A stretch of 64,000 nucleotides of DNA from Piromyces finnis finn (Eukaryota > Fungi > Neocallimastigomycota), in contig MCFH01000038.1 in the NCBI GenBank assembly GCA_002104945.1, positions 186,001-250,000 of the forward strand, read 5' to 3'. The notes beneath the pieces were generated by a model. That model saw nothing but the letters and a program-made list of their open reading frames with translations. It did no database searches and had not been told where the DNA came from. Shown in pieces: positions 1 through 14,904 of this stretch. A program made the translations under genes and the position numbers. Numbering within the stretch: the stretch's first letter is position 1; every line of letters starts with the position of its first letter.

Positions 1-700
1 TATTCATAATATATTTTATAATACTTAAACTAAACTTAAGACTTATTCCTAGTTATTAAAAAATAACTATTGTTTATAATATTCATAATATTAATTATTT
101 CTTAATTATAATATAATTCATTGAATATAATATTAATAATTATAATCTTCTAGTTCAAAGATTATAAAATATGTTATTGAAATAATTATTATAAAATAAA
201 GTTAATTAGTTCCGGAAAATAATTTTAATTTAATTAAACAATAATTTTTATACTTTGAGTGAATGATTTATGTTTGATATATCAGGGGTGATCATTCTCT
301 GAATAAACAATTAATCATTGCTAACAAAATATCTTTAAATTGGAATATCTCGTGAACCAGCAGAGATATTGACCTGATTTTAAGATATGTTGTTTGTCTC
401 GAGCGTGGCTTTCTAACGAACGTAATTATAACCAAAATATTTTTATTCAAAAATCGTCATTCGTTGAGGAGATACGCGTGTTTTTTCTTATTCCATTTTA
501 ACGATAAGGGTTAAAGTTATTTATTATAAAAATTATTAAGGGTTAAGGTCATATTTTAACCTTTTCTAAATTTTTAAATATTTCTTAATAAAATTTTATA
601 ATTTATTTGAAAATAAAATATTTGTTGATTTTGAATTTTCATAAGTGATTTCACAATTCCAAGTGATCTTGAAATTGTAATTTCACTAGTATTCGTGACA
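1..700 (-). mobile_element. Family A LTR, truncated by the window edge (5' LTR of another A element or a solo LTR)
   Basis: Matches 2768-3468 and 9441-10141 with about 5 substitutions and 1 indel. Ends in ...GTGACA and is followed by family C LTR sequence, not by a PPT. Confidence 0.92.
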
Positions 701-751
701 TCGTGTTTATTCAGCTAGTTTTTATCATGTTTTTATGTGAGTAGCGTATAA
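701..751. mobile_element. Terminal 51 bp of a family C LTR interrupted by the family A LTR
   Basis: Near-identical to 1803-1853 (tcgtgtttattc.gctagttttta...gtgagtagcgtat.a) and followed by AGAA at 752-755. Confidence 0.85.
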
Positions 752-755
752 AGAA

Positions 756-1853
756 TGATGCGTTGACCGATATATTTTTGAATAATATAATATTTTTAAT
801 AAATAATAAATTCTAATATTTATGATGAAACAATAAATTTAAAATAAAATAAAATATGTTTTATAATTAACAAATAAATCACTCAAAAACTCGAAAATAA
901 ACTCTTTTTATTATGTTTAAATTATCTCTTTATTATATTTATAATTTATTTATTGTCTATTTATTGTCCGCCCTTTATAAAGAAGAATTTTATCTTCCTT
1001 TTATACATTTTCATTTATTACAGGTATTATTATTTTTAACTATTAAATGCTATTATAACTATTGTTATTATTTATTAAAATTAAAAGAATAAATTAAAAT
1101 TATGTCTTAGTATTATAAAATATTATAGAATATTACTTATTTGATTTTCTTATTACTTCAAAATGTTTAAATTTAGAAAAATTATTATAAATTATCATTG
1201 ACTATCATTAAATGTATAATACCTTGAATAAAATAATTAAAATTTAAAATTAAAATAATATTAAAATAAAATTAAAATAAAATTAAAATAAAAATTTAAC
1301 AAAATTAAAATATTAAAAGTATCAATTATTATAAACACTCATTTTATACAGAAACATAAAAGAGTTCTGTATTTTATCTTTGGAATTGTTATTATTGTTC
1401 TATTTCCAGGCTTTAAATTAATCACTTTTAGTAATAATTACTCAGTTATTTATTTGTTAATTTATATATATAAGTTTGAAAGAATTTCTAAAGAACACTT
1501 GGATAAAACACTAGAATTAATAATTTAATGTATATCATTTTATTTTTTTAGTTTATTTATTCATTTTTATTTACTTATTATTATTTTATTATTTTAATAC
1601 ATTTTTGGATTGAGTCGTTTTATTTTATTTAATAATTTATTTTATTATTATCTCTATTAAGTCGTTTTTATTCATAATTTATTATTTAATAAAGAGAATA
1701 TTATTTATTTAAAAGAAAGGGTTATATTTCCATAAAATTATTATTTATTCATTTTTAAGGGTTATTATCTTTTATTTTTATTATAAGTCGCTATGGGTTA
1801 AGTCGTGTTTATTCGGCTAGTTTTTATTACGTTTTTATGTGAGTAGCGTATCA
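756..1853. mobile_element. Putative solo LTR, family C (1098 bp)
   Basis: Starts TGATGCG and ends CGTATCA (imperfect terminal inverted repeat, TG...CA). Flanked by AGAA on both sides (752-755, 1854-1857). Its end is duplicated at 701-751. No ORF. Confidence 0.75.
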
Positions 1854-2434
1854 AGAATGATAACGGATTGGTAGTTATATTACAACTTTTTAACTACTTC
1901 TTCTGTTATCTTATATTGTTTTATCTCGACAGCTATTGTACGAGCTTTAACAATATCTACTAGTTTTATTAATTTATTTTAAGCTATTTTATAGTTTTAA
2001 TAGTTTTATTATTTAATAATATTTATATAGAATAATAACACCAGATTTATTCTATAAAATATTATTTATTATTAACACAATAATTACAAATTAGACAAGT
2101 TTAATTTCGTTTTTATATTTTCTTTTATTTATTGTTCTTACGCTCTTTTTAACAATAATTTTTATTATATAAAAACTTATTTTTGTCTTTTTAAATATTA
2201 TTATGTATTCACTAATTAATTATATTAACTATTATTAAAATTTAACTTATTATTAATAATCTAAGTCTTCTTATTTTCTACTAAAAATTATTATTATTCT
2301 TTATATTAAAAATTATTTTTATAATTTAACCCAATCAAATATATAAATTTATAAAATATTTGATTTTATGTAAATTATATTTTTATAATAAACTATATAA
2401 AATTATTTAATAATTATTTTATAATAAAATTTTC

Positions 2435-3468
2435 TGTAAAAGTTTTACTAAACTTATAATTTAATATTAAAATATCAAATTAAATAAAAGGTTAAAAGAT
2501 AACTAGGTTAGAAAAAAAAATGTTTTATTAAAATAATCTTAATTGATTTATAAATGAATAATTAAATTATGTATTATAGTTAAAATAATTCCTTTTTATT
2601 TTATTTAAAGAATATATATAATAATAAGATTATTTAATAGTAATACTTATTAAGTATTAATAAGTTAATAATCTTTACAAAGATTTAATTCATAAAACTA
2701 TTCTAAACTATTTATACTATTTGTAATTTTACATTTAATAATAAAATAACTTTTCAATACATGATTATATTCATAATATATTTTATAATACTTAAACTAA
2801 ACTTAAGACTTATTCCTAATTATTAAAAAATAACTATTGTTTATAATATTCATAATATTAATTATTTCTTAATTATAATATAATTCATTGAATATAATAT
2901 TAATAATTATAATCCTCTAGTTCAAAGATTATAAATTATGTTATTGAAATAATTATTATAAAATAAAGTTAATTAGTTCCGGAAAATAATTTTAATTTAA
3001 TTAAACAATAATTTTTTATACTTTGAGTGAATGATTTATGTTTGATATATCAGGGGTGATCATTCTCTGAATAAACAATTAATCATTGCTAACAAAATAT
3101 CTTTAAATTGGAATATCTCGTGAACCAGCAGAGATATTGACATGATTTTAAGATATGTTGTTTGTCTCGAGCGTGGCTTTCTAACGAACTTAATTATAAC
3201 CAAAATATTTTTATTCAAAAATCGTCATTCGTTGAGGAGATACGCGTGTTTTTTCTTATTCCATTTTAACGATAAGGGTTAAAGTTATTTATTATAAAAA
3301 TTATTAAGGGTTAAGGTCATATTTTAACCTTTTCTAAATTTTTAAATATTTCTTAATAAAATTTTATAATTTATTTGAAAATAAAATATTTGTTGATTTT
3401 GAATTTTCATAAGTGATTTCACAATTCCAAGTGATCTTGAAATTGTAATTTCACTAGTATTCGTGACA
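2435..3468 (-). repeat. 3' LTR of element A
   Basis: Direct repeat of 9108-10141 (offset 6673). TGTAAAAG...CGTGACA on the + strand. Confidence 0.96.
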
Positions 3469-3478
3469 TCGCTCCGCC
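3469..3478 (-). other. Putative polypurine tract of element A
   Basis: Minus strand GGCGGAGCGA directly abuts the 3' LTR start TGTCAC. Purine-rich but imperfect. Confidence 0.6.
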
Positions 3479-4390
3479 AAAAAAAATCGAATACCAGGCG
3501 ATTGAAATAATATAAAATAAAGTTGTATAATAAAGTATAATTGAAATAAATTGAAGTAGTATATATTAAATATAAACCAATATATAGTTGTATGTGTAAC
3601 ATGAAATAAAATGGTAACTAAATAAAGAATATATTTAATATAATATGTTGAATATATTGCAATATATGAAATAAAATTAAAAAACATTTTCTTGTGTAAC
3701 ATTCAGTCAAATTCATAAAATTTTTGAAAGAAATGTTGAAATTTAAATTGATCATTGAGAGAAAAAATTGAAATTCGTACGAAAAATTAAAATTTGAATA
3801 AGAAATATTATTCCTAGGATATTGAAACACTTTTTATTTTTGAAAAATGTTAACATTTGCTAAAATAATTGAAATTTCAAAAATTGATCAAATAAACTTT
3901 AATTAATATGATTTTGAAAAAAAAAAATTTTTGAAATTTTTGAAAAATTTTTAATAATAAAAAATTTTTTCATTAAATACAAAAAAAAATTTTGAACTAA
4001 ACTTTTTGAAAAAATGTCACTGAAGACTATTGATTTTAATGATCGATCGAGATGGTGACAATATTGAAATTGATACTATTGAATAGAGAATAAAATAAGC
4101 ATTAACAACATATAAATATTTGTAATTGTACTGCTAAAATAAATTGAAAATTATTCTCTTTAAATATTTAATTTTCATTATAAAAATTTTGTGTTTTAAA
4201 TTAAATAAATTGATAAAATTGTTGGATCAAAAATTATTGAATTGAAATTTAACATTCATAGAAAAAAATTTTTGAAATTTGTGTTGAAATGTATTAGATG
4301 AGTAATACAAATTATAATAAAACATAATGTTAGTGAAAGATATTAATAAATTTTTAAAAAAATAAAATTGATGAAATGCAATTTAAAGAA

Positions 4391-7300
4391 TTAGATTTTG
4401 TGTTTTCTAATACTTTTATTGAATTGAATTAATAATTCTTGATATCTTGGGTTACTTTCTATTACTGTAGCAGGAACCCAGTGCCAACTTAGGCGGTGTT
4501 TATAACGAATTTTATATTCGTAGCGTTTTTCTTTATAATTTGTCCTAAAGTCACCAATTTCTATAATTTCTGCATTAGTTTCTTTATATTTAAATCTATT
4601 TTTAAATTTATCTGGCGTAGATACATAAGGTTCAAGTTCCGATATGTGAAATACAGGGTGGTGTTTTGGAAAAGGTGATTTTGAAATATCTATTTTATAA
4701 TTACCATTGTTTAAAACTTCTAAAACCTTGTAAGGACCATACTTACGAGGCGCTAGTTTGGCATTTTCAGTAGTAGCAAAAGCAGGAGGTGCATGAATCC
4801 AAACTTTTTGTCCTTCATTCAATTCAGGAGCAATAATTCTTTTCTTATCGGCAGCTCTTTTGTATAAATCTTGAGATCTAAGCAAAACATCTTTAACTAA
4901 AAGGAAATTTTTACTAACATCTTTAATGTATTTAAAGTTTGAATCAGAACCTTGAAACAAAAAGACATCATCCATAGGTGGGTGGAATCCATAATTAATG
5001 AAAAATGGAGTTTGTTTTGTAGATTCATGAACAGTATTATTATAAACAAATTCAGCTAGATGTAACCATTCAATCCAGTCATCGTGGAAAAATGTTCTTG
5101 AATAGCAACGTAAATATTGTTCAATGAAAGAGTTACAACGTTCTACTTGACCAACGGTCTCATGGTGATCTGTGGTAGCTATTTTTGGCTTAACACGCAA
5201 TTTTTCCATAATTTCTATCCATAAAGCACTAGTAAATTGTGTTCCTCTGTCCGTATAAATATCTGTAGGTAGTCCATGGAGTTTAAAAATATTTTTTAGG
5301 AAAGCTTTGGCAGTTTCTTCAGCTGTAGGTATTTCTTTGAACGGAATAAGGTGAATCATTTTTGAAAAGCGATCTACAACAACCATTATAACGGAAAACT
5401 TTTTTGATTCAGGGAGACCACAAAGAAAATCGATTTCAATAGATTTCCAAGGGCGATCAGGAATTTCTAAAGGTCTTAAAAGATCATATCTTTTATGTCT
5501 ATTAACTTTATTTCTGGAACATTGTTCGCAAGAATTGACAAAATTTACGATATCTTGATGCATTTTGGGCCACCAAAAATTACGGTTAATTAGTTCTTCA
5601 GTTCTTCGAATACCTAAATGTCCAGCAGTAGCGTTATCATGGTACCTGGTTAAAATATCTACATGAAGTTTTTCTGGTACATAAATTAAATTATTATATA
5701 AAATTAAATTATTTTTTATTTTAAATTTTTCCATTTTTCTGAAAGGTCTGTAAAAGTAACCTTGATTAGCATTATTAGGACTAAAGTAAAGATAAATATT
5801 ATTCGCATTTTCATCATCCTTATAATTTTCTATTATTTGATCAATGAGAGAACCAACAATACCAACAAAACATGGAGTATCGGGAACGTTTTTATAATCT
5901 AATATATGTTCTGGTTTAGGTTCAACATTATTTTTCTCGTAATCAGGTCTTCTTGATAAACTATCAGGTTTACCATTTTTTCTTCCTTGGCGGTATATTA
6001 ATTGAAAATTATATTCTTGGAAAAATAAATGCCAACGATGTTGACGTTGGTTTCCGACTTTACCACCTAAGGTGTATAGAAGGTTTTTATGGTCAGTAAA
6101 AACGGTTACTTGGTATTTAGCACCTAGTAATAAATGTCTCCAGGTAGAAAATGCACATTTTATAGCTAAAAGTTCCTTTTCAGTAATTGAATAATTTAAT
6201 TCAGCATTGTTTAAACATCTTGAATAATATGCTACAGGATGTAATTTGTTATCTTCATCCTTTTGAGAAAGTATACAACCAATGGCAAAATTACTAGCAT
6301 CGCATTCGACAATAAATGGTTTGGTTGGATCTGGATGTAATAAAATAGGTGAAGAGATTAGTCTCTTTTTTAATTCTAAAAATGAGTTATTACATTTATC
6401 ATTCCAATTAAAACTAGTATTTTTCTTTGTTAAATTGTGAAGCGGTTTAGCAATAGTAGCAAAATCTTTTATAAATCTTCTATAATAGTTGCATAATCCA
6501 ACAAAGCGTTGAACATCTTTTACACAATTAGGTGTAGGCCATTCTTGGACAGATTTAATTTTCTTTGGATCAGTAGATATACCATTGCCTGATATAACGT
6601 GTCCTAAAAATTCAACTTCTGGCTTGTGAAATTCACATTTCTTTAATTTAGCAAATAAATTATTTTTGAGCAGTGTTTGGAGAACAGTACGAACATGTTG
6701 TATATGTTCATCTAATGTTTCCGAGTAAATCAGAATATCATCTAAATATAAAATAACAAATTTTTCTAAATAAGGGCGTAATACTGAATTAATAAATGAT
6801 TGAAATGTAGCAGGGGCATTTCTTAAACCAAAAGGCATTACTAAATATTCATAGTGACCATATTTAGTTCTAAAAGCTGTCTTATATTCGTCTCCTTCAC
6901 GAATACGCACTAAATTGTAAGCAGAACGAAGATCTAATTTTGAAAAGAATTTAGCACCTTTCACTCTTTCGATAATATCAGTAATTAGAGGAAGTGGGTA
7001 AGAATTGCGAATTGTAACTGCATTTAATTTTTTGTAATCAATACAAAGACGTAACGATCCATCCTTCTTTTTCTGAAATAAAACAGGATAACCAGCTGGA
7101 GATTCAGATGGTCTAATGAATCCTTTCTTGAGATTTTCATCTATGTATTCTTTAAGAACTTGGGATTCATCTTCAGATAGAGGATATATAGGACCATAAT
7201 GTAAAGAAGCATCTTTTTGTAAAACGATTTTACAATCCGTTAGCCTATGTGGTGGTAGTTTATCAGCCTTAACCTTGCTGAAAACTTCCGCTAAATCACG

Positions 7301-8092
7301 ATATGGTTCTGGTACTTCTTCTAATTTGAAGTCTTCTTCATTATCATCTTCATCATCAGTATTATAATCTTTTTCACTATTAGCTAAAAATGAGTGAATA
7401 AAGTAATTATAGCTGAAATTTTGATATTTTGGTTTAGAGTAATTTTTCAAATTATTAAAAGATGTATTGGAAGTTAATTTATTATGATTAATGTTTTTAA
7501 TTTTTAAATTTTTGGATTTATTCAATCGGTTTTTATTAATTTTATATATAATTTTATTAGAATTTAATTTTTTAAAATTGTTAAAATTTAAACTTGAATA
7601 TACAAAATTTTTATTATAATTAAAATGTAGTTGATATTTGTGTAAAAATTTATTGCCTAATAACAAATCTGTTGGAAGATTTTTAATAATTAGAAATTTT
7701 TCTTTAAAAGTAATTAAAAATTTTGAATGATTAATATAGATAGTAGTCTTAAAATATAAGAAGGTGTATGTATCAATAAATATTGAACCACTAATTCCAT
7801 TTATTTCAATTGAGTGTAATAATTTGTGTGGTTTTAGTTTTAATTTATTGACCAAGTTGATTGAAATAAAGTTGCAATATGAGCCACTATCTAAAATTAA
7901 ATTGTATTGATTTTTATTAATTGAATTTTTTAAATCATAAAGTTTGTTTAATTTAATTGGGATAAAAAATTTTAAGTTGAAAAATGTTGTAGGCAATTTT
8001 TTATTTATTTTAGAGTCATATGTAGGAAAGTTGTAATGTATTATTTTTGTATTATGAACTCTCTTAGACTCTCTTGAGAGTTCATTTCTTAG
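4391..8092 (-). CDS. pol: Pol polyprotein of element A (protease, RT, RNase H, integrase, chromodomain-like C-terminus), reached by -1 frameshift
   Basis: Motifs LILDSGS (PR), YLDD (RT), ECDAS (RNase H), H-H-C-C plus D,D,E core and GPY (IN), and a chromo-like tail. The frame is open upstream of the tracked start 7996 as far as the gag slippery site. Confidence 0.96.
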   Translation of the reverse strand, partial: LRNELSRESKRVHNTKIIHYNFPTYDSKINKKLPTTFFNLKFFIPIKLNKLYDLKNSINKNQYNLILDSGSYCNFISINLVNKLKLKPHKLLHSIEINGISGSIFIDTYTFLYFKTTIYINHSKFLITFKEKFLIIKNLPTDLLLGNKFLHKYQLHFNYNKNFVYSSLNFNNFKKLNSNKIIYKINKNRLNKSKNLKIKNINHNKLTSNTSFNNLKNYSKPKYQNFSYNYFIHSFLANSEKDYNTDDEDDNEEDFKLEEVPEPYRDLAEVFSKVKADKLPPHRLTDCKIVLQKDASLHYGPIYPLSEDESQVLKEYIDENLKKGFIRPSESPAGYPVLFQKKKDGSLRLCIDYKKLNAVTIRNSYPLPLITDIIERVKGAKFFSKLDLRSAYNLVRIREGDEYKTAFRTKYGHYEYLVMPFGLRNAPATFQSFINSVLRPYLEKFVILYLDDILIYSETLDEHIQHVRTVLQTLLKNNLFAKLKKCEFHKPEVEFLGHVISGNGISTDPKKIKSVQEWPTPNCVKDVQRFVGLCNYYRRFIKDFATIAKPLHNLTKKNTSFNWNDKCNNSFLELKKRLISSPILLHPDPTKPFIVECDASNFAIGCILSQKDEDNKLHPVAYYSRCLNNAELNYSITEKELLAIKCAFSTWRHLLLGAKYQVTVFTDHKNLLYTLGGKVGNQRQHRWHLFFQEYNFQLIYRQGRKNGKPDSLSRRPDYEKNNVEPKPEHILDYKNVPDTPCFVGIVGSLIDQIIENYKDDENANNIYLYFSPNNANQGYFYRPFRKMEKFKIKNNLILYNNLIYVPEKLHVDILTRYHDNATAGHLGIRRTEELINRNFWWPKMHQDIVNFVNSCEQCSRNKVNRHKRYDLLRPLEIPDRPWKSIEIDFLCGLPESKKFSVIMVVVDRFSKMIHLIPFKEIPTAEETAKAFLKNIFKLHGLPTDIYTDRGTQFTSALWIEIMEKLRVKPKIATTDHHETVGQVERCNSFIEQYLRCYSRTFFHDDWIEWLHLAEFVYNNTVHESTKQTPFFINYGFHPPMDDVFLFQGSDSNFKYIKDVSKNFLLVKDVLLRSQDLYKRAADKKRIIAPELNEGQKVWIHAPPAFATTENAKLAPRKYGPYKVLEVLNNGNYKIDISKSPFPKHHPVFHISELEPYVSTPDKFKNRFKYKETNAEIIEIGDFRTNYKEKRYEYKIRYKHRLSWHWVPATVIESNPRYQELLIQFNKSIRKHKI

Positions 8093-8098
8093 TTTTTT
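8054..8098 (-). promoter_or_regulatory. -1 ribosomal frameshift signal of element A
   Basis: In-frame heptamer A AAA AAC (8098-8092) directly before the gag stop, 6-nt spacer, then a perfect 10-bp stem ATGAACTCTC/GAGAGTTCAT (8085-8076 / 8063-8054). Pol is in the -1 frame. Confidence 0.88.
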
Positions 8099-8997
8099 GA
8101 GTTCATCTTTTGAACTTTATTGACATAATTATTATTATTGTTTGAATTTTGATAATGGGTTTTATTCTTATTGAATTTCCTATTGTTTCTCTTATTGTAA
8201 TGTTGATTTTTATTATTATTATTATTGATATTTAATTTATTATTAGTAACAAGAGAATTTTCAAAAATTATACACTTTGTAACCATTTCACTTAAAGTGT
8301 TAGGTAAAATATCAGCTTTCTTAATTTCATTCTTATATTTTGGATGTAAACCATTTAAAAATATTAGTGAAAGACTAATGTCATCTATCTCTAAACAACG
8401 ACTTAAATCTCTAAATTTGTTAATATAATCGTTCACTTTTCCATAAGCTTGTCTTAATTCTATTAATTGAATCATGGCTAATTTGGTACTGGTAACATTT
8501 GAAAAAGCTTTGTTTAATTCACTTAATAGTTCGTTCATAGTCATAGGAGTAATACCATCTTTATATTTAATATGATACCAAGTTCTGGCAGAATCACGTA
8601 ATCTAACAACAACAAAGTTAATTTTTACTTCTTCAGATAGTTGATTGTTAGGTGGAGTTTTAAAGGTAGCTTGGCAGAGTTCGCAGAATAACTCAGTCTG
8701 AGTAGTATCACCAGTAAAGAATCCTGGATCTGGTACTTGTTTGATAGGATAGGTTCTATTACGCATTATAACATCATGATCTTCATCATAATCGGTAGAA
8801 GATTCCTCGGTTTCAGTATAATTAGCACGACTCTTAAGTTCCTTTAACATAGCATCCATACGTTCTAACAAGGAGGTGGTATTTTTATCCAATTGTTGAG
8901 TGATATACTTGTCTAATTCACCACAAAGATTTTTCTTAAATTCTTCTAAATCTTGAGGCTTTAGGAATTGTTGAACTGGTTTAGGTGTTGGTTGAGT

Positions 8998-9000
<3 letters not shown>
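8089..9000 (-). CDS. gag: Gag of element A (303 aa)
   Basis: Retrotransposon capsid-like motifs (PDPGFFTGD, LRDSARTWY). Lies between the 5' LTR and pol. No CCHC knuckle. Confidence 0.92.
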
Positions 9001-9055
<55 letters not shown>

Positions 9056-9096
9056 AAATTAAGTTTTTTCCTAAGGTAGTTATGGTAAAAAACGCG

Positions 9097-9107
9097 GTAA
9101 AGATTAT
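9097..9107 (-). promoter_or_regulatory. Self-priming PBS of element A, complementary to LTR 9341-9351
   Basis: Minus strand ATAATCTTTAC directly after the 5' LTR, with no TGG tRNA-type PBS. The exact 11-nt complement GTAAAGATTAT is at 9351-9341 inside the LTR. Confidence 0.8.
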
Positions 9108-10141
9108 TGTAAAAGTTTTACTAAACTTATAATTTAATATTAAAATATCAAATTAAATAAAAGGTTAAAAGATAACTAGGTTAGAAAAAAAAATGTTTTA
9201 TTAAAATAATCTTAATTGATTTATAAATGAATAATTAAATTATGTATTATAGTTAAAATAATTCCTTTTTATTTTATTTAAAGAATATATATAATAATAA
9301 GATTATTTAATAGTAATACTTATTAAGTATTAATAAGTTAATAATCTTTACAAAGATTTAATTCATAAAACTATTCTAAACTATTTATACTATTTGTAAT
9401 TTTACATTTAATAATAAAATAACTTTTCAATACATGATTATATTCATAATATATTTTATAATACTTAAACTAAACTTAAGACTTATTCCTAATTATTAAA
9501 AAATAACTATTGTTTATAATATTCATAATATTAATTATTTCTTAATTATAATATAATTCATTGAATATAATATTAATAATTATAATCCTCTAGTTCAAAG
9601 ATTATAAATTATGTTATTGAAATAATTATTATAAAATAAAGTTAATTAGTTCCGGAAAATAATTTTAATTTAATTAAACAATAATTTTTTATACTTTGAG
9701 TGAATGATTTATGTTTGATATATCAGGGGTGATCATTCTCTGAATAAACAATTAATCATTGCTAACAAAATATCTTTAAATTGGAATATCTCGTGAACCA
9801 GCAGAGATATTGACATGATTTTAAGATATGTTGTTTGTCTCGAGCGTGGCTTTCTAACGAACTTAATTATAACCAAAATATTTTTATTCAAAAATCGTCA
9901 TTCGTTGAGGAGATACGCGTGTTTTTTCTTATTCCATTTTAACGATAAGGGTTAAAGTTATTTATTATAAAAATTATTAAGGGTTAAGGTCATATTTTAA
10001 CCTTTTCTAAATTTTTAAATATTTCTTAATAAAATTTTATAATTTATTTGAAAATAAAATATTTGTTGATTTTGAATTTTCATAAGTGATTTCACAATTC
10101 CAAGTGATCTTGAAATTGTAATTTCACTAGTATTCGTGACA
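9108..10141 (-). repeat. 5' LTR of element A
   Basis: Direct repeat of 2435-3468. Contains TATAAATA (minus strand, 9389-9382) about 30 nt upstream of the predicted start at 9351. Confidence 0.96.
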
Positions 10142-10194
10142 TTTTCTACTAATATCAAATGTATAATATATTTATAATTATTATTTATCAAGAA

Positions 10195-10814
10195 TGATAA
10201 CGGATTGGTAGTTATATTACAACTTTTTAACTACTTCTTCTGTTATCTTATATTGTTTTATCTCGACAGCTATTGTACGAGCTTTAACAATATCTACTTG
10301 TTTTATTATTTATTTTAATTTATTTTATAATATTTATAGTTTTATTATTTAATAATATTTATATAGAATAATAACACCAGATTTATTCTATAAAATATTA
10401 TTTATTATTAACACAATAATTACAAATTAGACAAGTTTAATTTCGTTTTTATATTTTCTTTTATTTATTGTTCTTACGCTCTTTTTAACAATAATTTTTA
10501 TTATATAAAAACTTATTTTTTGTCTTTTAAATATTATTATGTATTCACTAATTAATTATATTAACTATTATTAAAATTTAACTTATTATTAGTAATCTAA
10601 GTCTTCCTATTTTCTACTAAAAATTATTATTATTCTTTATATTAAAAATTATTTTTATAATTTAACCCAATCAAATATATAAATTTATAAAATATTTGAT
10701 TTTATGTAAATTATATTTTTATAATAAACTATATAAAATTATTTAATAATTATTTTATAATAAAATTTTCTACTAATATCAAATTTATAATATATTTATA
10801 ATTATTATTTATCA
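10195..10814 (-). repeat. 3' LTR of element B
   Basis: Direct repeat of 14109-14728. Confidence 0.96.
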
Positions 10815-10817
10815 AGA

Positions 10818-10828
10818 TTTCCTCCCCT
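10818..10828 (-). other. Polypurine tract of element B
   Basis: Minus strand AGGGGAGGAAA, 3 nt before the 3' LTR. Confidence 0.85.
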
Positions 10829-11165
10829 AAGATACGACTTAGTGGTAGCTGATAAAAATATTCATAAATAATAATAAATATATAAGTTTTTGATATTTTT
10901 ATACTAAATATTTAAAAATTTAAATTTTTTTTTTTTCTATATATATATATATATATATATGATAAAAATAATATAAAATAAGGTTTATAAAAAAATGATG
11001 AAAAATTTGAAAATTTTTATTAATAAAATTTTTTTTTTTTTCAAAGAGAAATAAAAAAAATGAAGTGAAATTTTGTTAAATGTCGTAGTGTAAATATTTT
11101 TGTGTTTTTATATATTTTTGTAATGTAATTGTCGTATTATTTGTATATAAATGTTTAATGTGGTT

Positions 11166-13157
11166 TTATCTTTCTTTAAACTTTGAAAATAGATGAAATT
11201 TTGATTTTAATATGTCGAAATAATGTCGTTTTAAAATTGAAGTTACTGATTTGATATAATCTTTTAGATTGAAAATAATTGAATTTGAAATACTTTCTTT
11301 TACACTTTTTATTATACTGAAATATATATTCTTAAACGAATTATTTGATGAATTTTTGATTATATCATTTTGTTTATTTCGCTTTTTTCTTGATTTTAAT
11401 TTCCTGTTAATATTAATATTCAAATGATTATATTTTAGAATTTTACTTTTATTTTTATATATCTTGATTTTGTGGCATTTTTCGTGAATAATTGGCGTTT
11501 TTTCTGCTTCATCACGGCCGACAAGATTTGACTTATTAATTGAAAATTTAATAAGTGAATCGTTTTTAATTCTTTTTGGAAATTTGCTGAAATTTGAATG
11601 AAAAATGTGATATTTTGGATAAAAATATTTATTTTTAAATTTGAATAAATGTCGAAATTTAATTGAATAAAAAAGTTTGTTTTTATTGTTAAAAGTCGAA
11701 TTAAAATTTTGAATTTTGATATTATTATTAAATGAATTAAATTGAGATTCATTAATATTTGATGGATTGAAACAATGAATCATTGAAATATTTGAAAGAT
11801 TATTTTTATTTTGTTTAAAATTTGAGGGACGAGCAACCATAATAGGAGATGAATTAGTTTTCATGTAGAGAGAGTCATCATCAGGATCAATGTATAATCG
11901 GTGATTCTTTTGAGATTGACGACCTAATATAATATCATAACATGAATCTTCATCTTCTAGAATCCAGAATAATGCATAGATTTTTAAATCACCAAATTTA
12001 AGAGTTAAATTAACAGCTTGATTTGTTGAAATAACTTGTTTGCTAGCTAATTTAAAGAAAGTTCTCTTAAAATGTGTAATATTATGATTTGCTGATATTA
12101 AATTAAAGAAGGATTTAGTAATAACATTAACATCAGAACCAGTATCTACTAAAACTCGGACAATGTTATTATCAATTGAGCCAATGACAGAAGCAATGTT
12201 GATTTTATTAATGACATTAATTTCGTTATCTGCTATATTGATAATATCATCATCATTGTCATTATCAGCATCATCATTGTTTTCATTATTTTTATTATTA
12301 TAATTTTCATTAATGATATTAATAAATGAATTAATATCATCATCATTAAGATCCATATTTTGAATGGCGTTTATTTTCCGAACATCATTTGGATCAAGCT
12401 TTAAACCTTTGGCACAAAGTCTTCTGATGATAGGACTGACTGCAAGCAATTGTGCAAAAGAGATACCAGCATTTGTATTATTAAGGGCATCAAAAATATT
12501 ATATTCTTTATTTTTGCCCAACATGACAATAGAACGTAGGAAGTCATAATAGTTGCTTTTGGGAGACTTTTTGCTATCTATAACTTCTTCTAATTCGTCC
12601 TGTTTACTTGGTATATCTGGACCAATTCTTCTTTTATTTCTGGTTTCTTTATTTTTCATCTTAGCAGAGGAAATATTCTTGCCTGCAATTACCGAGGGGT
12701 CTAAGATGTCTAGGCGGGAAGTAGTGGTATGAAAATTTGAATTTTTCTCATTACGAATTTCTTGCTGTTCTTTCATCTGAGTGGCCTTTGTATGTATTGG
12801 TAATGGATTTTCTCGAAGTTTCTTTTTCTTCGACTGAGTCACGTGATCCTCATCATCACTTTCATCACTTTCTTCAGAACTTTTTCTCTTGAATGCATAA
12901 ATAAGGTTTTCGATGTCCTTATCATCGACTGTATTTGTCACGTGATCACGTGTAACGTAATCCTTATCATCTTCATTGATTGGATCATCCACCAAAGGGT
13001 TAGAGAATTTTTCTTTAGAATTTGGAAATTTTTTTGTTTTATGGAAATCACGTGTATCATCAACATAGATTTGCTCATTAATGTTGTTGATGTTGTGGGT
13101 TTGGTTATTATCAATTTTGGAGTTAGAAGGGGAAGATTGAGAACTTCCCCCATTTAA
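11166..13157 (-). CDS. ORF2 of element B: aspartic protease plus low-complexity tail, fused to Gag by -1 frameshift
   Basis: VLVDTGSDVN and DIILGR retropepsin motifs. The frame is open from the slippery site through the tracked ORF 11166-12995. No YxDD or integrase motif. Confidence 0.87.
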   Translation of the reverse strand, partial: LNGGSSQSSPSNSKIDNNQTHNINNINEQIYVDDTRDFHKTKKFPNSKEKFSNPLVDDPINEDDKDYVTRDHVTNTVDDKDIENLIYAFKRKSSEESDESDDEDHVTQSKKKKLRENPLPIHTKATQMKEQQEIRNEKNSNFHTTTSRLDILDPSVIAGKNISSAKMKNKETRNKRRIGPDIPSKQDELEEVIDSKKSPKSNYYDFLRSIVMLGKNKEYNIFDALNNTNAGISFAQLLAVSPIIRRLCAKGLKLDPNDVRKINAIQNMDLNDDDINSFINIINENYNNKNNENNDDADNDNDDDIINIADNEINVINKINIASVIGSIDNNIVRVLVDTGSDVNVITKSFFNLISANHNITHFKRTFFKLASKQVISTNQAVNLTLKFGDLKIYALFWILEDEDSCYDIILGRQSQKNHRLYIDPDDDSLYMKTNSSPIMVARPSNFKQNKNNLSNISMIHCFNPSNINESQFNSFNNNIKIQNFNSTFNNKNKLFYSIKFRHLFKFKNKYFYPKYHIFHSNFSKFPKRIKNDSLIKFSINKSNLVGRDEAEKTPIIHEKCHKIKIYKNKSKILKYNHLNININRKLKSRKKRNKQNDIIKNSSNNSFKNIYFSIIKSVKESISNSIIFNLKDYIKSVTSILKRHYFDILKSKFHLFSKFKER

Positions 13158-13163
13158 TTTAAA
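13129..13163 (-). promoter_or_regulatory. -1 ribosomal frameshift signal of element B
   Basis: In-frame heptamer T TTA AAT (13163-13157) directly before the gag stop, then stem GGGGAAG/CTTCCCC (13150-13144 / 13135-13129) with an 8-nt loop. Confidence 0.85.
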
Positions 13164-14008
13164 TGGTTTTGGGTTTTGAGGAGGGTAGCTATGATTTTGT
13201 TCACATCGGTCATTTCGTTTGGGCAGAAGCGGGCATCATGTCCTTTCTGGTTACAACGGTGGCAGATATGAATTTTCATCTGGGCAAAGCTTTTGGTCAA
13301 AGCATCCAGATCTGATTCTTTAGCTTCTTCTTTAGTAGTCTTTTCATTATCAGTACTACTATTATTTTCGTTATTATTATAAGAGGTTTTATCTTCAACT
13401 TCTATTTTTCTCTTATAATAATTATTTTTGTTTTGAGTTCTTTTATTGGGTACATATTCATCATCACTTTCATAAGCAGATAGAAGCTCATCTGCTTTAA
13501 TAGCAATGACCATAGCATCCTTTAAAGTTTTTGGTTGTTTGTTAATAAGAGAATTTAATATAGAAGTTCTCCTATTAAAAGCTTTTGTATAAAGAAAAAC
13601 AAGTCTTTCTTCAGAAGGCTTGTCCCTTTCTTTAATTTCTTTCAAAAGGTCGTTAAAAGAACGGTTAAATTCTCTAACAGAGCTTTTGTTTACTTTTATT
13701 TTTTCTAACTTATTTAGGTTTCTATTAGAGGTTTTATCATCCTCAAATAAGTTAGATATTTTATTGATAAATTCATTATAAGATAGGGATCTATCTTCAT
13801 AATAAATATCACTACAAAGATCCTTTGAGTTACCGGTAGTAGCAAGCAAAGCAATTCTCTTCTTTTCTTTTTCAGAAAGAGCTAAGTCTTCTAAGATATC
13901 TTCAAGTTCCATTTTCCATCTGAAGAACTTAGTATTTTTCTTGCCAAGAGGGCTTATTTCTTTAGCCATACTAGCGGCTCTTTCAAAATTGTTTTTATTT
14001 TCAGTCAT
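13154..14008 (-). CDS. gag: Gag of element B with CCHC zinc knuckle (284 aa)
   Basis: CHRCNQKGHDARFC nucleocapsid knuckle. First ORF after the PBS. Confidence 0.92.
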   Translation of the reverse strand: MTENKNNFERAASMAKEISPLGKKNTKFFRWKMELEDILEDLALSEKEKKRIALLATTGNSKDLCSDIYYEDRSLSYNEFINKISNLFEDDKTSNRNLNKLEKIKVNKSSVREFNRSFNDLLKEIKERDKPSEERLVFLYTKAFNRRTSILNSLINKQPKTLKDAMVIAIKADELLSAYESDDEYVPNKRTQNKNNYYKRKIEVEDKTSYNNNENNSSTDNEKTTKEEAKESDLDALTKSFAQMKIHICHRCNQKGHDARFCPNEMTDVNKIIATLLKTQNHLN

Positions 14009-14090
14009 ATTTAGTAAATAAATAAGATAATTATACTAAATATACTAATTAATAGGAATTATTTAAATTTTCGGCTTTCCCACGGGACGA

Positions 14091-14106
14091 CTGAGGTTCT
14101 CCACCA
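14091..14106 (-). promoter_or_regulatory. tRNA-type primer binding site of element B (probably tRNA-Ala)
   Basis: Minus strand TGGTGGAGAACCTCAG, 2 nt after the 5' LTR. The implied primer ends ...GTTCTCC-A-CCA, with U70 and A73 as in tRNA-Ala (G3:U70 identity). Confidence 0.78.
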
Positions 14107-14108
14107 CT

Positions 14109-14728
14109 TGATAACGGATTGGTAGTTATATTACAACTTTTTAACTACTTCTTCTGTTATCTTATATTGTTTTATCTCGACAGCTATTGTACGAGCTTTA
14201 ACAATATCTACTTGTTTTATTATTTATTTTAATTTATTTTATAATATTTATAGTTTTATTATTTAATAATATTTATATAGAATAATAACACCAGATTTAT
14301 TCTATAAAATATTATTTATTATTAACACAATAATTACAAATTAGACAAGTTTAATTTCGTTTTTATATTTTCTTTTATTTATTGTTCTTACGCTCTTTTT
14401 AACAATAATTTTTATTATATAAAAACTTATTTTTTGTCTTTTAAATATTATTATGTATTCACTAATTAATTATATTAACTATTATTAAAATTTAACTTAT
14501 TATTAGTAATCTAAGTCTTCCTATTTTCTACTAAAAATTATTATTATTCTTTATATTAAAAATTATTTTTATAATTTAACCCAATCAAATATATAAATTT
14601 ATAAAATATTTGATTTTATGTAAATTATATTTTTATAATAAACTATATAAAATTATTTAATAATTATTTTATAATAAAATTTTCTACTAATATCAAATTT
14701 ATAATATATTTATAATTATTATTTATCA
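14109..14728 (-). repeat. 5' LTR of element B
   Basis: Direct repeat of 10195-10814. Ends 16 nt upstream of the tRNA gene. Confidence 0.96.
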
Positions 14729-14744
14729 AGAAAAATCAGTAATT

Positions 14745-14816
14745 GGGGTGTTAGCTCAGCGGTAGAGCAATTGACTGCAGATCAATAGGTCTTCGGTTCA
14801 AATCCGGAACGCCCCT
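14745..14816 (+). tRNA. tRNA-Cys (GCA)
   Basis: Acceptor stem GGGGTGT/ACGCCCC, anticodon arm ATTGA-CTGCAGA-TCAAT, T-arm GGTTCAAATCC, discriminator U, and a T-run at 14821-14825. Confidence 0.97.
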
Positions 14817-14904
14817 TAAATTTTTATAACATTTTAAGAACTTCAATAAATTAATTATTAAATATTAACTTCAATTTTATTTATAAATTTATAGATTTAC
14901 ACTT

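Follow-up and report, generated by a model that had tools for sequence, protein, structure and literature searches.

Probable serial insertion of LTR retrotransposons in front of a tRNA-Cys gene of Piromyces finnis, with a second fixed register at about -65

Why should several long terminal repeat (LTR) retrotransposons stand one behind another in front of a single transfer RNA (tRNA) gene, each separated from the next by exactly one copy of the same four letters? This question is raised by a stretch of 64,000 nucleotides (nt) from Piromyces finnis finn (G000:C165:186001-250000, hereafter the window), in which copies of three LTR families, here called B, C and D, lead up to a tRNA-Cys(GCA) gene. 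It is the sole tRNA gene that ARAGORN calls in the window, whose G+C content is 21.5%. The genome searched comprised 56,455,805 bases in 232 contigs. We found that the region is very probably a time-ordered series of stacked LTR-retrotransposon insertions, directed at a single gene that RNA polymerase III (Pol III) transcribes.

A first-pass annotation of the window had described a series of C and B units, each divided from its neighbour by AGAA, and all of its unit boundaries and separators matched our direct reading and self-comparison to the base (Table 1). Since one 4-mer is common to the chained units, they point to serial integration at the same bonds. Two units had to be redescribed. 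What had been taken for one solo B LTR at 1858-10190 has the right termini, but is really an LTR of 620 base pairs (bp; 1858-2434 plus 10142-10190) split by a D element of 7707 bp. The last 5 nt of its first part, TTTTC, are the left copy of the D target duplication. In addition, the B element next to the tRNA gene had been called full length; its LTRs do match (0 differences in 620 positions), but it lacks reverse transcriptase (RT), RNase H and integrase. Between the last AGAA and the tRNA gene lies a 12-nt spacer, AAATCAGTAATT, which presumably holds the Pol III start site and the pre-tRNA leader.

The stack does not stop at the left edge of the window. More stacked units follow leftward, over about 3.8 kb. 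They comprise one more LTR of family C, a B LTR in reverse orientation that a short interspersed element (SINE) interrupts, and the main part of the old C LTR whose tail enters the window. The spacer in this extension is GAAA, that is, the A-rich site of AGAA with its register shifted by 1 nt. The old C LTR (body at -1484 to -424, left of the window) is 88.8% identical to the solo C LTR, and its terminal CA has mutated to AA at position 751. It is in turn interrupted by a solo D LTR, whose part at 1-700 shows 99% identity to the D LTR stretches 2768-3468 and 9441-10141. The whole stack is thus about 18.5 kb long and contains six proximal (-16) insertions, two D insertions (-65) and one SINE. 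The earlier estimate of at least four integrations by two families was an undercount, but its central idea, the serial reuse of AGAA, stands. Furthermore, age increases outward: the outermost C units have 85-89% identity to the solo C LTR and decayed termini, and the innermost element has identical LTRs. Stacking and outward ageing would both follow because an internal promoter address survives every insertion. Unique sequence flanks the repeat stack on both sides of the contig.

Is AGAA a target site or a piece of the LTRs? The matching 4-bp flanks of other B and C copies include AAAA, TTTA, ACGT, TTGT, TTAT, TTCT, ATAG, AAAT, TCAA and ATCA. Because these 4-mers vary from locus to locus, AGAA is not LTR sequence, in agreement with the first-pass annotation. 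The idea that an AGA next to the LTR on its internal side makes AGAA element sequence was considered and rejected; that AGA belongs to the polypurine-tract junction, and the outer flanks vary. B and C show a 4-bp duplication at every checked site, in place of the 5 bp of the Ty3 type, and this difference from Ty3 had also been foreseen.

To estimate how general the association is, we looked at it both from the elements and from the tRNA genes. The B LTR has at least 40 copies in the genome; the C LTR also has at least 40, with 89-98% identity, and full-length C elements measure about 9.8 kb. About 22 B insertions were sampled by LTR similarity. Nine of these adjoin a tRNA gene, which turns its 5′ end toward the LTR, and one more adjoins a SINE head; nearly all of the remaining ones lie between termini of other LTR families, i.e., in similar stacks. 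Seven C copies adjoin tRNA genes, with gaps of 13-16 nt. Taken together, the LTR end lies 13-18 nt from the mature tRNA 5′ end in 16/16 independent B or C cases (16, 14 and 13 nt four times each, 15 nt twice, 17 and 18 nt once each; one duplicate was removed from these counts). At tRNA genes, B occurs in both orientations (4 and 5 copies) and C in one only (7/7). The adjoining genes are of at least nine kinds, namely tRNA-Cys, Ser, Trp, Glu, Ala, Thr and Met as well as intron-containing tRNA genes; in all, the targets include tRNA-Cys, Ser (two anticodons), Trp, Glu, Ala, Thr, Met, Gly, Val and intron-containing genes. Dozens of loci, spread over many contigs, repeat this arrangement with 4-mers specific to the site. 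A few B and C copies lie away from tRNA genes.

For the reciprocal sample, the 40 best-scoring tRNA matches of the genome were chosen blind to repeats. Nineteen of the 40 were the second member of a closely spaced tRNA pair and 21 stood alone. A terminus of a multi-copy repeat (LTR) was found 11-22 nt upstream of 17 of the 21 stand-alone genes, and 11-16 nt ahead of the first gene in eight pairs. At least ten LTR families, told apart by their termini, use the position just upstream of tRNA genes. The chance of such a tRNA neighbour at a random site is about 1.5 in 10,000, from a rough upper count of 2914 tRNA candidates, and the association of B and C with tRNA genes is far beyond chance. The existence of a Pol III-targeted retrotransposon system, proposed from this one locus, is therefore supported by the genome-wide association from both directions.

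In addition, tRNA genes are not the only sequences struck. The heads of four tRNA-derived SINE copies have an LTR end 7-12 nt upstream, from B, C and two further families, and two of these cases come from 20 randomly taken SINE copies. Rfam returned no family for the repeated sequence beside two LTR ends, which was later recognised as the SINE head. The SINE of the left extension (L145:7934-8490, about -2066 to -1510 in window numbering) is about 580 nt long and poly(A)-tailed, and its insertion into the reversed B LTR goes with a duplication of some 14 nt. Its head is tRNA-like (GTCGTTCCAGTTTTTATCCTGG...), and GGTTCGACCCC in it resembles a B box. Over their first 265 nt, at least 40 copies have about 100% identity (for instance, G000:C1:2076993 and G000:C146:112669).

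Family D follows another rule. It has at least 45 LTR copies in the genome with 99-100% identity, and 7/7 checked copies carry 5-bp duplications. At the outer 5′-side ends, a tRNA gene lies 64-68 nt away in 13 of 23 cases (mode 66), and at the ends of the other side in 0 of 10; the 5′ end of D always faces the tRNA gene. Three more D copies have been displaced from their tRNA gene by a later proximal insertion, like the copy in the window. In our stack, one D copy ends 49 nt within the B LTR, and the other ends 51 nt within the old C LTR. For the former, 49 + 4 + 12 gives 65 nt from the tRNA position before the last B insertion, and both copies fit the register, with 65 and 67 nt, if their host LTRs then adjoined the tRNA gene. 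The interval that separates D from the tRNA gene, roughly 50 nt, consists of the tails of various LTR families and differs among loci; at one locus (L091, judged by eye, not against a repeat library) there is no recognisable LTR end between them. Since the sequence of this interval varies and the distance is constant, the ruler is the tRNA gene and not the host LTR. Furthermore, at G000:C135:109911-115092 (flanks L061 and L062), five tandem solo D LTRs follow one another at 5-nt spacing, the last of them 65 nt upstream of a tRNA-Ala gene, which is a stack in the second register alone.

Two minor observations concern D loci. At L083 and L090 (G000:C177:290026-290237 and G000:C185:326294-326505), D is followed by an LTR-like tail ending in GTAACGAATC and then by a repeated tRNA-like stretch, GTCTTAGTGGTTAGTA...AAGAC, for which ARAGORN and Rfam made no call; this stretch may be another Pol III-type target. 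Moreover, in contigs of runs X1 and X5 a D LTR end is followed, after a few letters, by a D LTR start (window 9103-10141). Such joins are as expected from tandem solo-LTR stacks at other places in the genome, and circular two-LTR forms are an alternative.

How might one small gene attract so many insertions at the same bonds? The internal A and B boxes of a tRNA gene would recruit TFIIIC, which would place TFIIIB upstream. An aiming signal in or on the tRNA gene would be unharmed by insertion. B and C would integrate 13-18 nt before the mature tRNA 5′ end, about where Pol III starts, and each insertion would restore AGAA and the 12-nt leader beside the gene, so that the next element could land at the same bonds and older copies would be pushed outward. 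D would use the second fixed site 64-68 nt upstream, and would hence land about 50 nt inside the LTR nearest the gene. In yeast, TFIIIB covers -15 to -32. If Pol III starts where presumed, the D site lies about 50 nt farther upstream, which would be just past the upstream edge of TFIIIB, and by this analogy it is a reasonable guess that D docks on the far side of TFIIIB.

Several other histories could leave LTRs in front of a tRNA gene. Selection does shape transposon distributions generally, and a few copies of B, C and D are found apart from tRNA genes, so one might suppose that integration is random and that purifying selection spared only the harmless copies beside tRNA genes. We regard this as very unlikely, because selection cannot yield single-base precision at either distance, and it does not explain the fixed orientation of D (13 to 0) or the repeated use of an identical 4-mer. 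Moreover, the newest copies, with 0 differences in their 620- and 1034-bp LTR pairs, have left little time for it. It is hardly credible, too, that the array owes its form to events among the repeats, whether recombination, segmental duplication or gene conversion, and not to serial integration: adjacent units are of different families, each with complete TG...CA termini, every unit is flanked by one duplicated 4-mer common with its neighbour, as serial insertion predicts, other stacks carry 4-mers of their own, and the D element inside the B LTR has its own 5-bp duplication. Nevertheless, unequal crossing-over can build LTR arrays, and the solo LTRs here show that LTR-LTR recombination took place.

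The elements might also recognise a DNA sequence, AGAA or LTR ends, and not the Pol III machinery. All four junctions in the window are AGAA, and both D copies lie about 50 nt inside an LTR, which agrees with this idea. However, it has very little probability when all loci are taken together, since the target 4-mers vary, the leaders between the duplication and the tRNA gene differ, the host sequence of D changes at a constant 64-68 nt (L091 included), and SINE heads, which bear a Pol III promoter, are struck as well. Varied 4-mers and leaders, varied tRNA genes, a constant distance and the SINE-head cases favour a protein-based ruler over a DNA motif. Could the stack finally be an assembly artefact of collapsed or chained repeats? 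The region is almost wholly repeats, and none of the short Logan contigs of public runs bridges a junction. Yet the junctions are clean to the base and their duplications match, dozens of loci spread over many contigs are built in this way although their tRNA genes and 4-mers differ, and the contig reaches unique sequence on both sides; we consider an artefact most improbable.

It should be noted that, besides the lack of bridging contigs, four points weigh against insertion aimed at Pol III genes. Four D copies (L067, L075, L088 and L093) have no tRNA gene within 200 nt. Three metagenome contigs (L166-L168), whose pol is 52-53% identical to that of B, show no tRNA gene; this says little, because the contigs of closer relatives are not long enough to include what flanks the elements. 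The Brf1-contacting chromodomain of Ty3 is absent from B and C, so their mechanism cannot be a copy of that of Ty3. Finally, the two exact registers, the duplications, the orientation rules, the reuse of sites and the domain content are observations, whereas we infer the tethering of the integrases to TFIIIB or the Pol III pre-initiation complex by analogy with Ty3. The trait is established within this one genome.

The coding capacity of the elements bears on this comparison. The order protease (PR), RT, RNase H (RH) and integrase (IN) between TG...CA LTRs is present in an autonomous B element (L104), in a full-length C element (L103) and in D. B and C are related elements of the Ty3/gypsy type, both with 4-bp duplications, TGAT...ATCA termini and similar primer-binding sites, and their integrases are 51% identical. 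Beyond the SH3-like C-terminal domain, these integrases go on for 4-14 residues and stop; there is no further open reading frame (ORF) between the integrase end and the LTR, and a chromodomain is absent. The pol proteins of B and D are 33% identical. Among solved structures, the best match of both is Ty3 (PDB 7Q5B), with 326 bits for B (L104) and 460 bits for D, which is chiefly because no other member of this class has a solved structure.

The B element of the window, whose LTR pair is identical at 620/620 positions, is non-autonomous. Compared with the 6.6-kb autonomous B, a 2.8-kb RT-RH-IN segment has been swapped for 754 unrelated nt. This replacement (11065-11818) has no match in autonomous B and supplies the C-terminal third of a 609-amino-acid (aa) ORF. 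The gag-protease part is 87% identical to that of autonomous B, whereas identity in the LTRs is 98%. Judged by LTR spacing, the short form is commoner than the autonomous one in the sampled copies (spacing of about 3.9 kb vs about 5.96 kb). The B internal region also occurs in contigs of runs that are presumed to be RNA; their nature is uncertain, and we draw no claim of expression from them.

The D integrase runs about 60 residues past its SH3 domain. Pfam Chromo was not detected in this C-terminus, but its residues align with the chromodomains of Chromo-positive chromovirus integrases. The AlphaFold model of the C-terminus (confidence score, pLDDT, 89) has three strands and a helix, and its fold matches Ty3 integrase chains and the chromodomains of MPP8, CDYL2 and HP1 with template-modelling (TM) scores of 0.7-0.86; the top structural matches of the SH3-chromodomain tandem are chains of the Ty3 intasome. 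By alignment and predicted fold, D is a chromovirus with a diverged chromodomain. In alignment A1, two of the three positions of the aromatic cage are changed, the first Tyr to Ala and the Trp to Tyr, and the third aromatic is lost; the methyl-lysine cage is not canonical. The D LTR pair is identical at 1034/1034 positions. No TGG-type primer-binding site was found beside the 5′ LTR of D. The 11 nt next to that LTR (9097-9107) have a perfect complement within it at 9341-9351, which resembles, in sequence, the self-priming elements of the Tf1/sushi type, whose primer site pairs with their own 5′ LTR.

The positions of these features in the window are given in Table 1.

Table 1. Features of the stack and of its elements in the window (negative positions lie to the left of the window; a dot marks features without a strand)
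Feature	Position	Strand	Remarks
Solo D LTR, 3′ part	1-700	-	Starts at about -426; inside old C LTR; ends GTGACA at 700
Old C LTR tail	701-751	-	Final 51 nt; 94% identity to solo C LTR positions 1048-1096
AGAA target-site copy	752-755	.	Direct reading
Solo C LTR	756-1853	-	1098 bp; starts TGATGCG, ends GTATCA; TG/CA termini
AGAA target-site copy	1854-1857	.	Direct reading
Solo B LTR, first 577 nt	1858-2434	-	98.1% identity to LTR of the B element in the window
D target duplication TTTTC	2430-2434 and 10142-10146		5 bp
Full-length D element	2435-10141	-	7707 bp; LTRs 2435-3468 and 9108-10141
D pol ORF	4391-7996	-	1201 aa; PR-RT-RH-IN with SH3 and diverged chromodomain (predicted)
D gag ORF	8089-9000	-	
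Solo B LTR, last 49 nt	10142-10190	-	Ends TTATCA
AGAA target-site copy	10191-10194	.	Direct reading
Non-autonomous B element	10195-14728	-	4534 bp; LTRs 10195-10814 and 14109-14728
B polypurine tract	10815-10832		
B 609-aa ORF	11166-12995		Aspartyl protease as sole domain (Pfam)
B gag ORF	13154-14008		Pfam Ty3_capsid
B primer-binding site, tRNA type	14091-14106		
AGAA target-site copy, tRNA side	14729-14732	.	Direct reading
12-nt spacer AAATCAGTAATT	14733-14744	+	Direct reading
tRNA-Cys(GCA) gene	14745-14816	+	ARAGORN; T5 terminator at 14821-14825

Ty3 is the natural reference for these elements. It integrates a few bases upstream of Pol III starts, about 15 nt before the mature tRNA (PMC5006619, PMC5911963), and its SH3 domain contacts TBP and its vestigial chromodomain Brf1, which together make an integration ruler (10.1101/2021.07.27.453949). 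Ty3 and the Ty3-like yeast elements Ty3p, Tj1, Tyl3, Tyl6, Ylt1 and Tca8 share the Ty3/gypsy gene order with the elements described here; in both groups, the site outlives each insertion and many different tRNA genes are used. However, Ty3 makes a 5-bp duplication and has a vestigial chromodomain, whereas B and C make 4 bp and their integrase ends after SH3. D shares the SH3-chromodomain tandem with Ty3, but inserts at -65 and not at the start site. The Ty3 group is found in ascomycete yeasts, and here at least ten families of one member of Neocallimastigomycota have the habit. In our judgement, the start-site targeting of B and C looks convergent with that of Ty3, because they have no chromodomain, duplicate 4 bp on insertion and stand no nearer to Ty3 than D does.

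The dictyostelids offer closer parallels in behaviour. DGLT-A, a Ty3/gypsy element without a chromodomain, is found in both orientations upstream of tRNA genes, at distances of 13-33 nt with a mean of 15 (PMC5006619, PMC5911963), and its start-site targeting has been proposed as convergent (PMC5006619). It is like B in position, in the lack of a chromodomain and in using both orientations, a likeness of behaviour only; it differs in its single gag-pol ORF and its amoebozoan host, and C here keeps to one orientation. The non-LTR elements TRE5-A and NLTR-B use a fixed register about 48-50 nt upstream, with fixed orientation, and this register occurs beside a -15 register within one genome (PMC5006619). 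D resembles them in having a second fixed register, but it belongs to the LTR elements and is not a LINE, has an integrase, duplicates 5 bp and inserts about 15 nt farther away. Skipper-2 is a chromovirus whose diverged chromodomain goes with association to tRNA genes and not to heterochromatin (PMC5006619); both it and D have a diverged chromodomain, but Skipper-2 lies downstream of tRNA genes and D upstream at an exact distance. Finally, the copia-type Ty1 inserts upstream of Pol III genes beyond the TFIIIB footprint. Its integrase binds the Pol III subunit AC40, and in this way the element uses a broad window of about 750 bp with nucleosomal periodicity (PMC7459421). The window of D is 5 nt wide.

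The reviews consulted list Pol III-directed LTR elements only from ascomycete yeasts and dictyostelids (PMC5911963, PMC5006619), and our full-text literature searches found no report of such elements in anaerobic gut fungi or Neocallimastigomycota. The start-site register is Pol III targeting of the Ty3/DGLT-A kind in Neocallimastigomycota, a kind already known; what is more unusual is that an LTR element keeps to an exact register at -65. We give about an even chance to a wider proposal, namely that a guild of at least ten LTR families reaches Pol III genes through two tethering geometries, one chromodomain-less, at the start site and convergent with Ty3, the other that of an orientation-locked chromovirus at -65, whose diverged chromodomain would dock on the upstream TFIIIB-DNA face. 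If true, the -65 geometry would be one undescribed for any LTR element. A third, distant lineage would be added, and the view of tRNA genes as a recurrent safe haven would be strengthened. Chromodomain-less integrases that reach the start site would be a natural comparison for how Ty3-like precision is built, and the stacks would record the activity of transposons in order of time. Knowledge of a landing site beside tRNA genes that is well tolerated and has a precise address could also guide the design of integration sites. To our knowledge, anaerobic gut fungi lack genetic tools.

Two features of the host genome are added here. The TBP and Brf1 genes are each split into several exons. Furthermore, the genome contains tight tRNA pairs, in which tRNA-Glu or tRNA-Gly(TCC) is followed after 6-9 nt by a second tRNA gene (loci L107-L114 and L125-L144, for example G000:C4:35220-35359 and G000:C45:19554-19693), and in one case tRNA-Ser is followed by tRNA-Met with an 8-nt spacer (L016). 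These pairs recall the dimeric tRNA genes of fission yeast.

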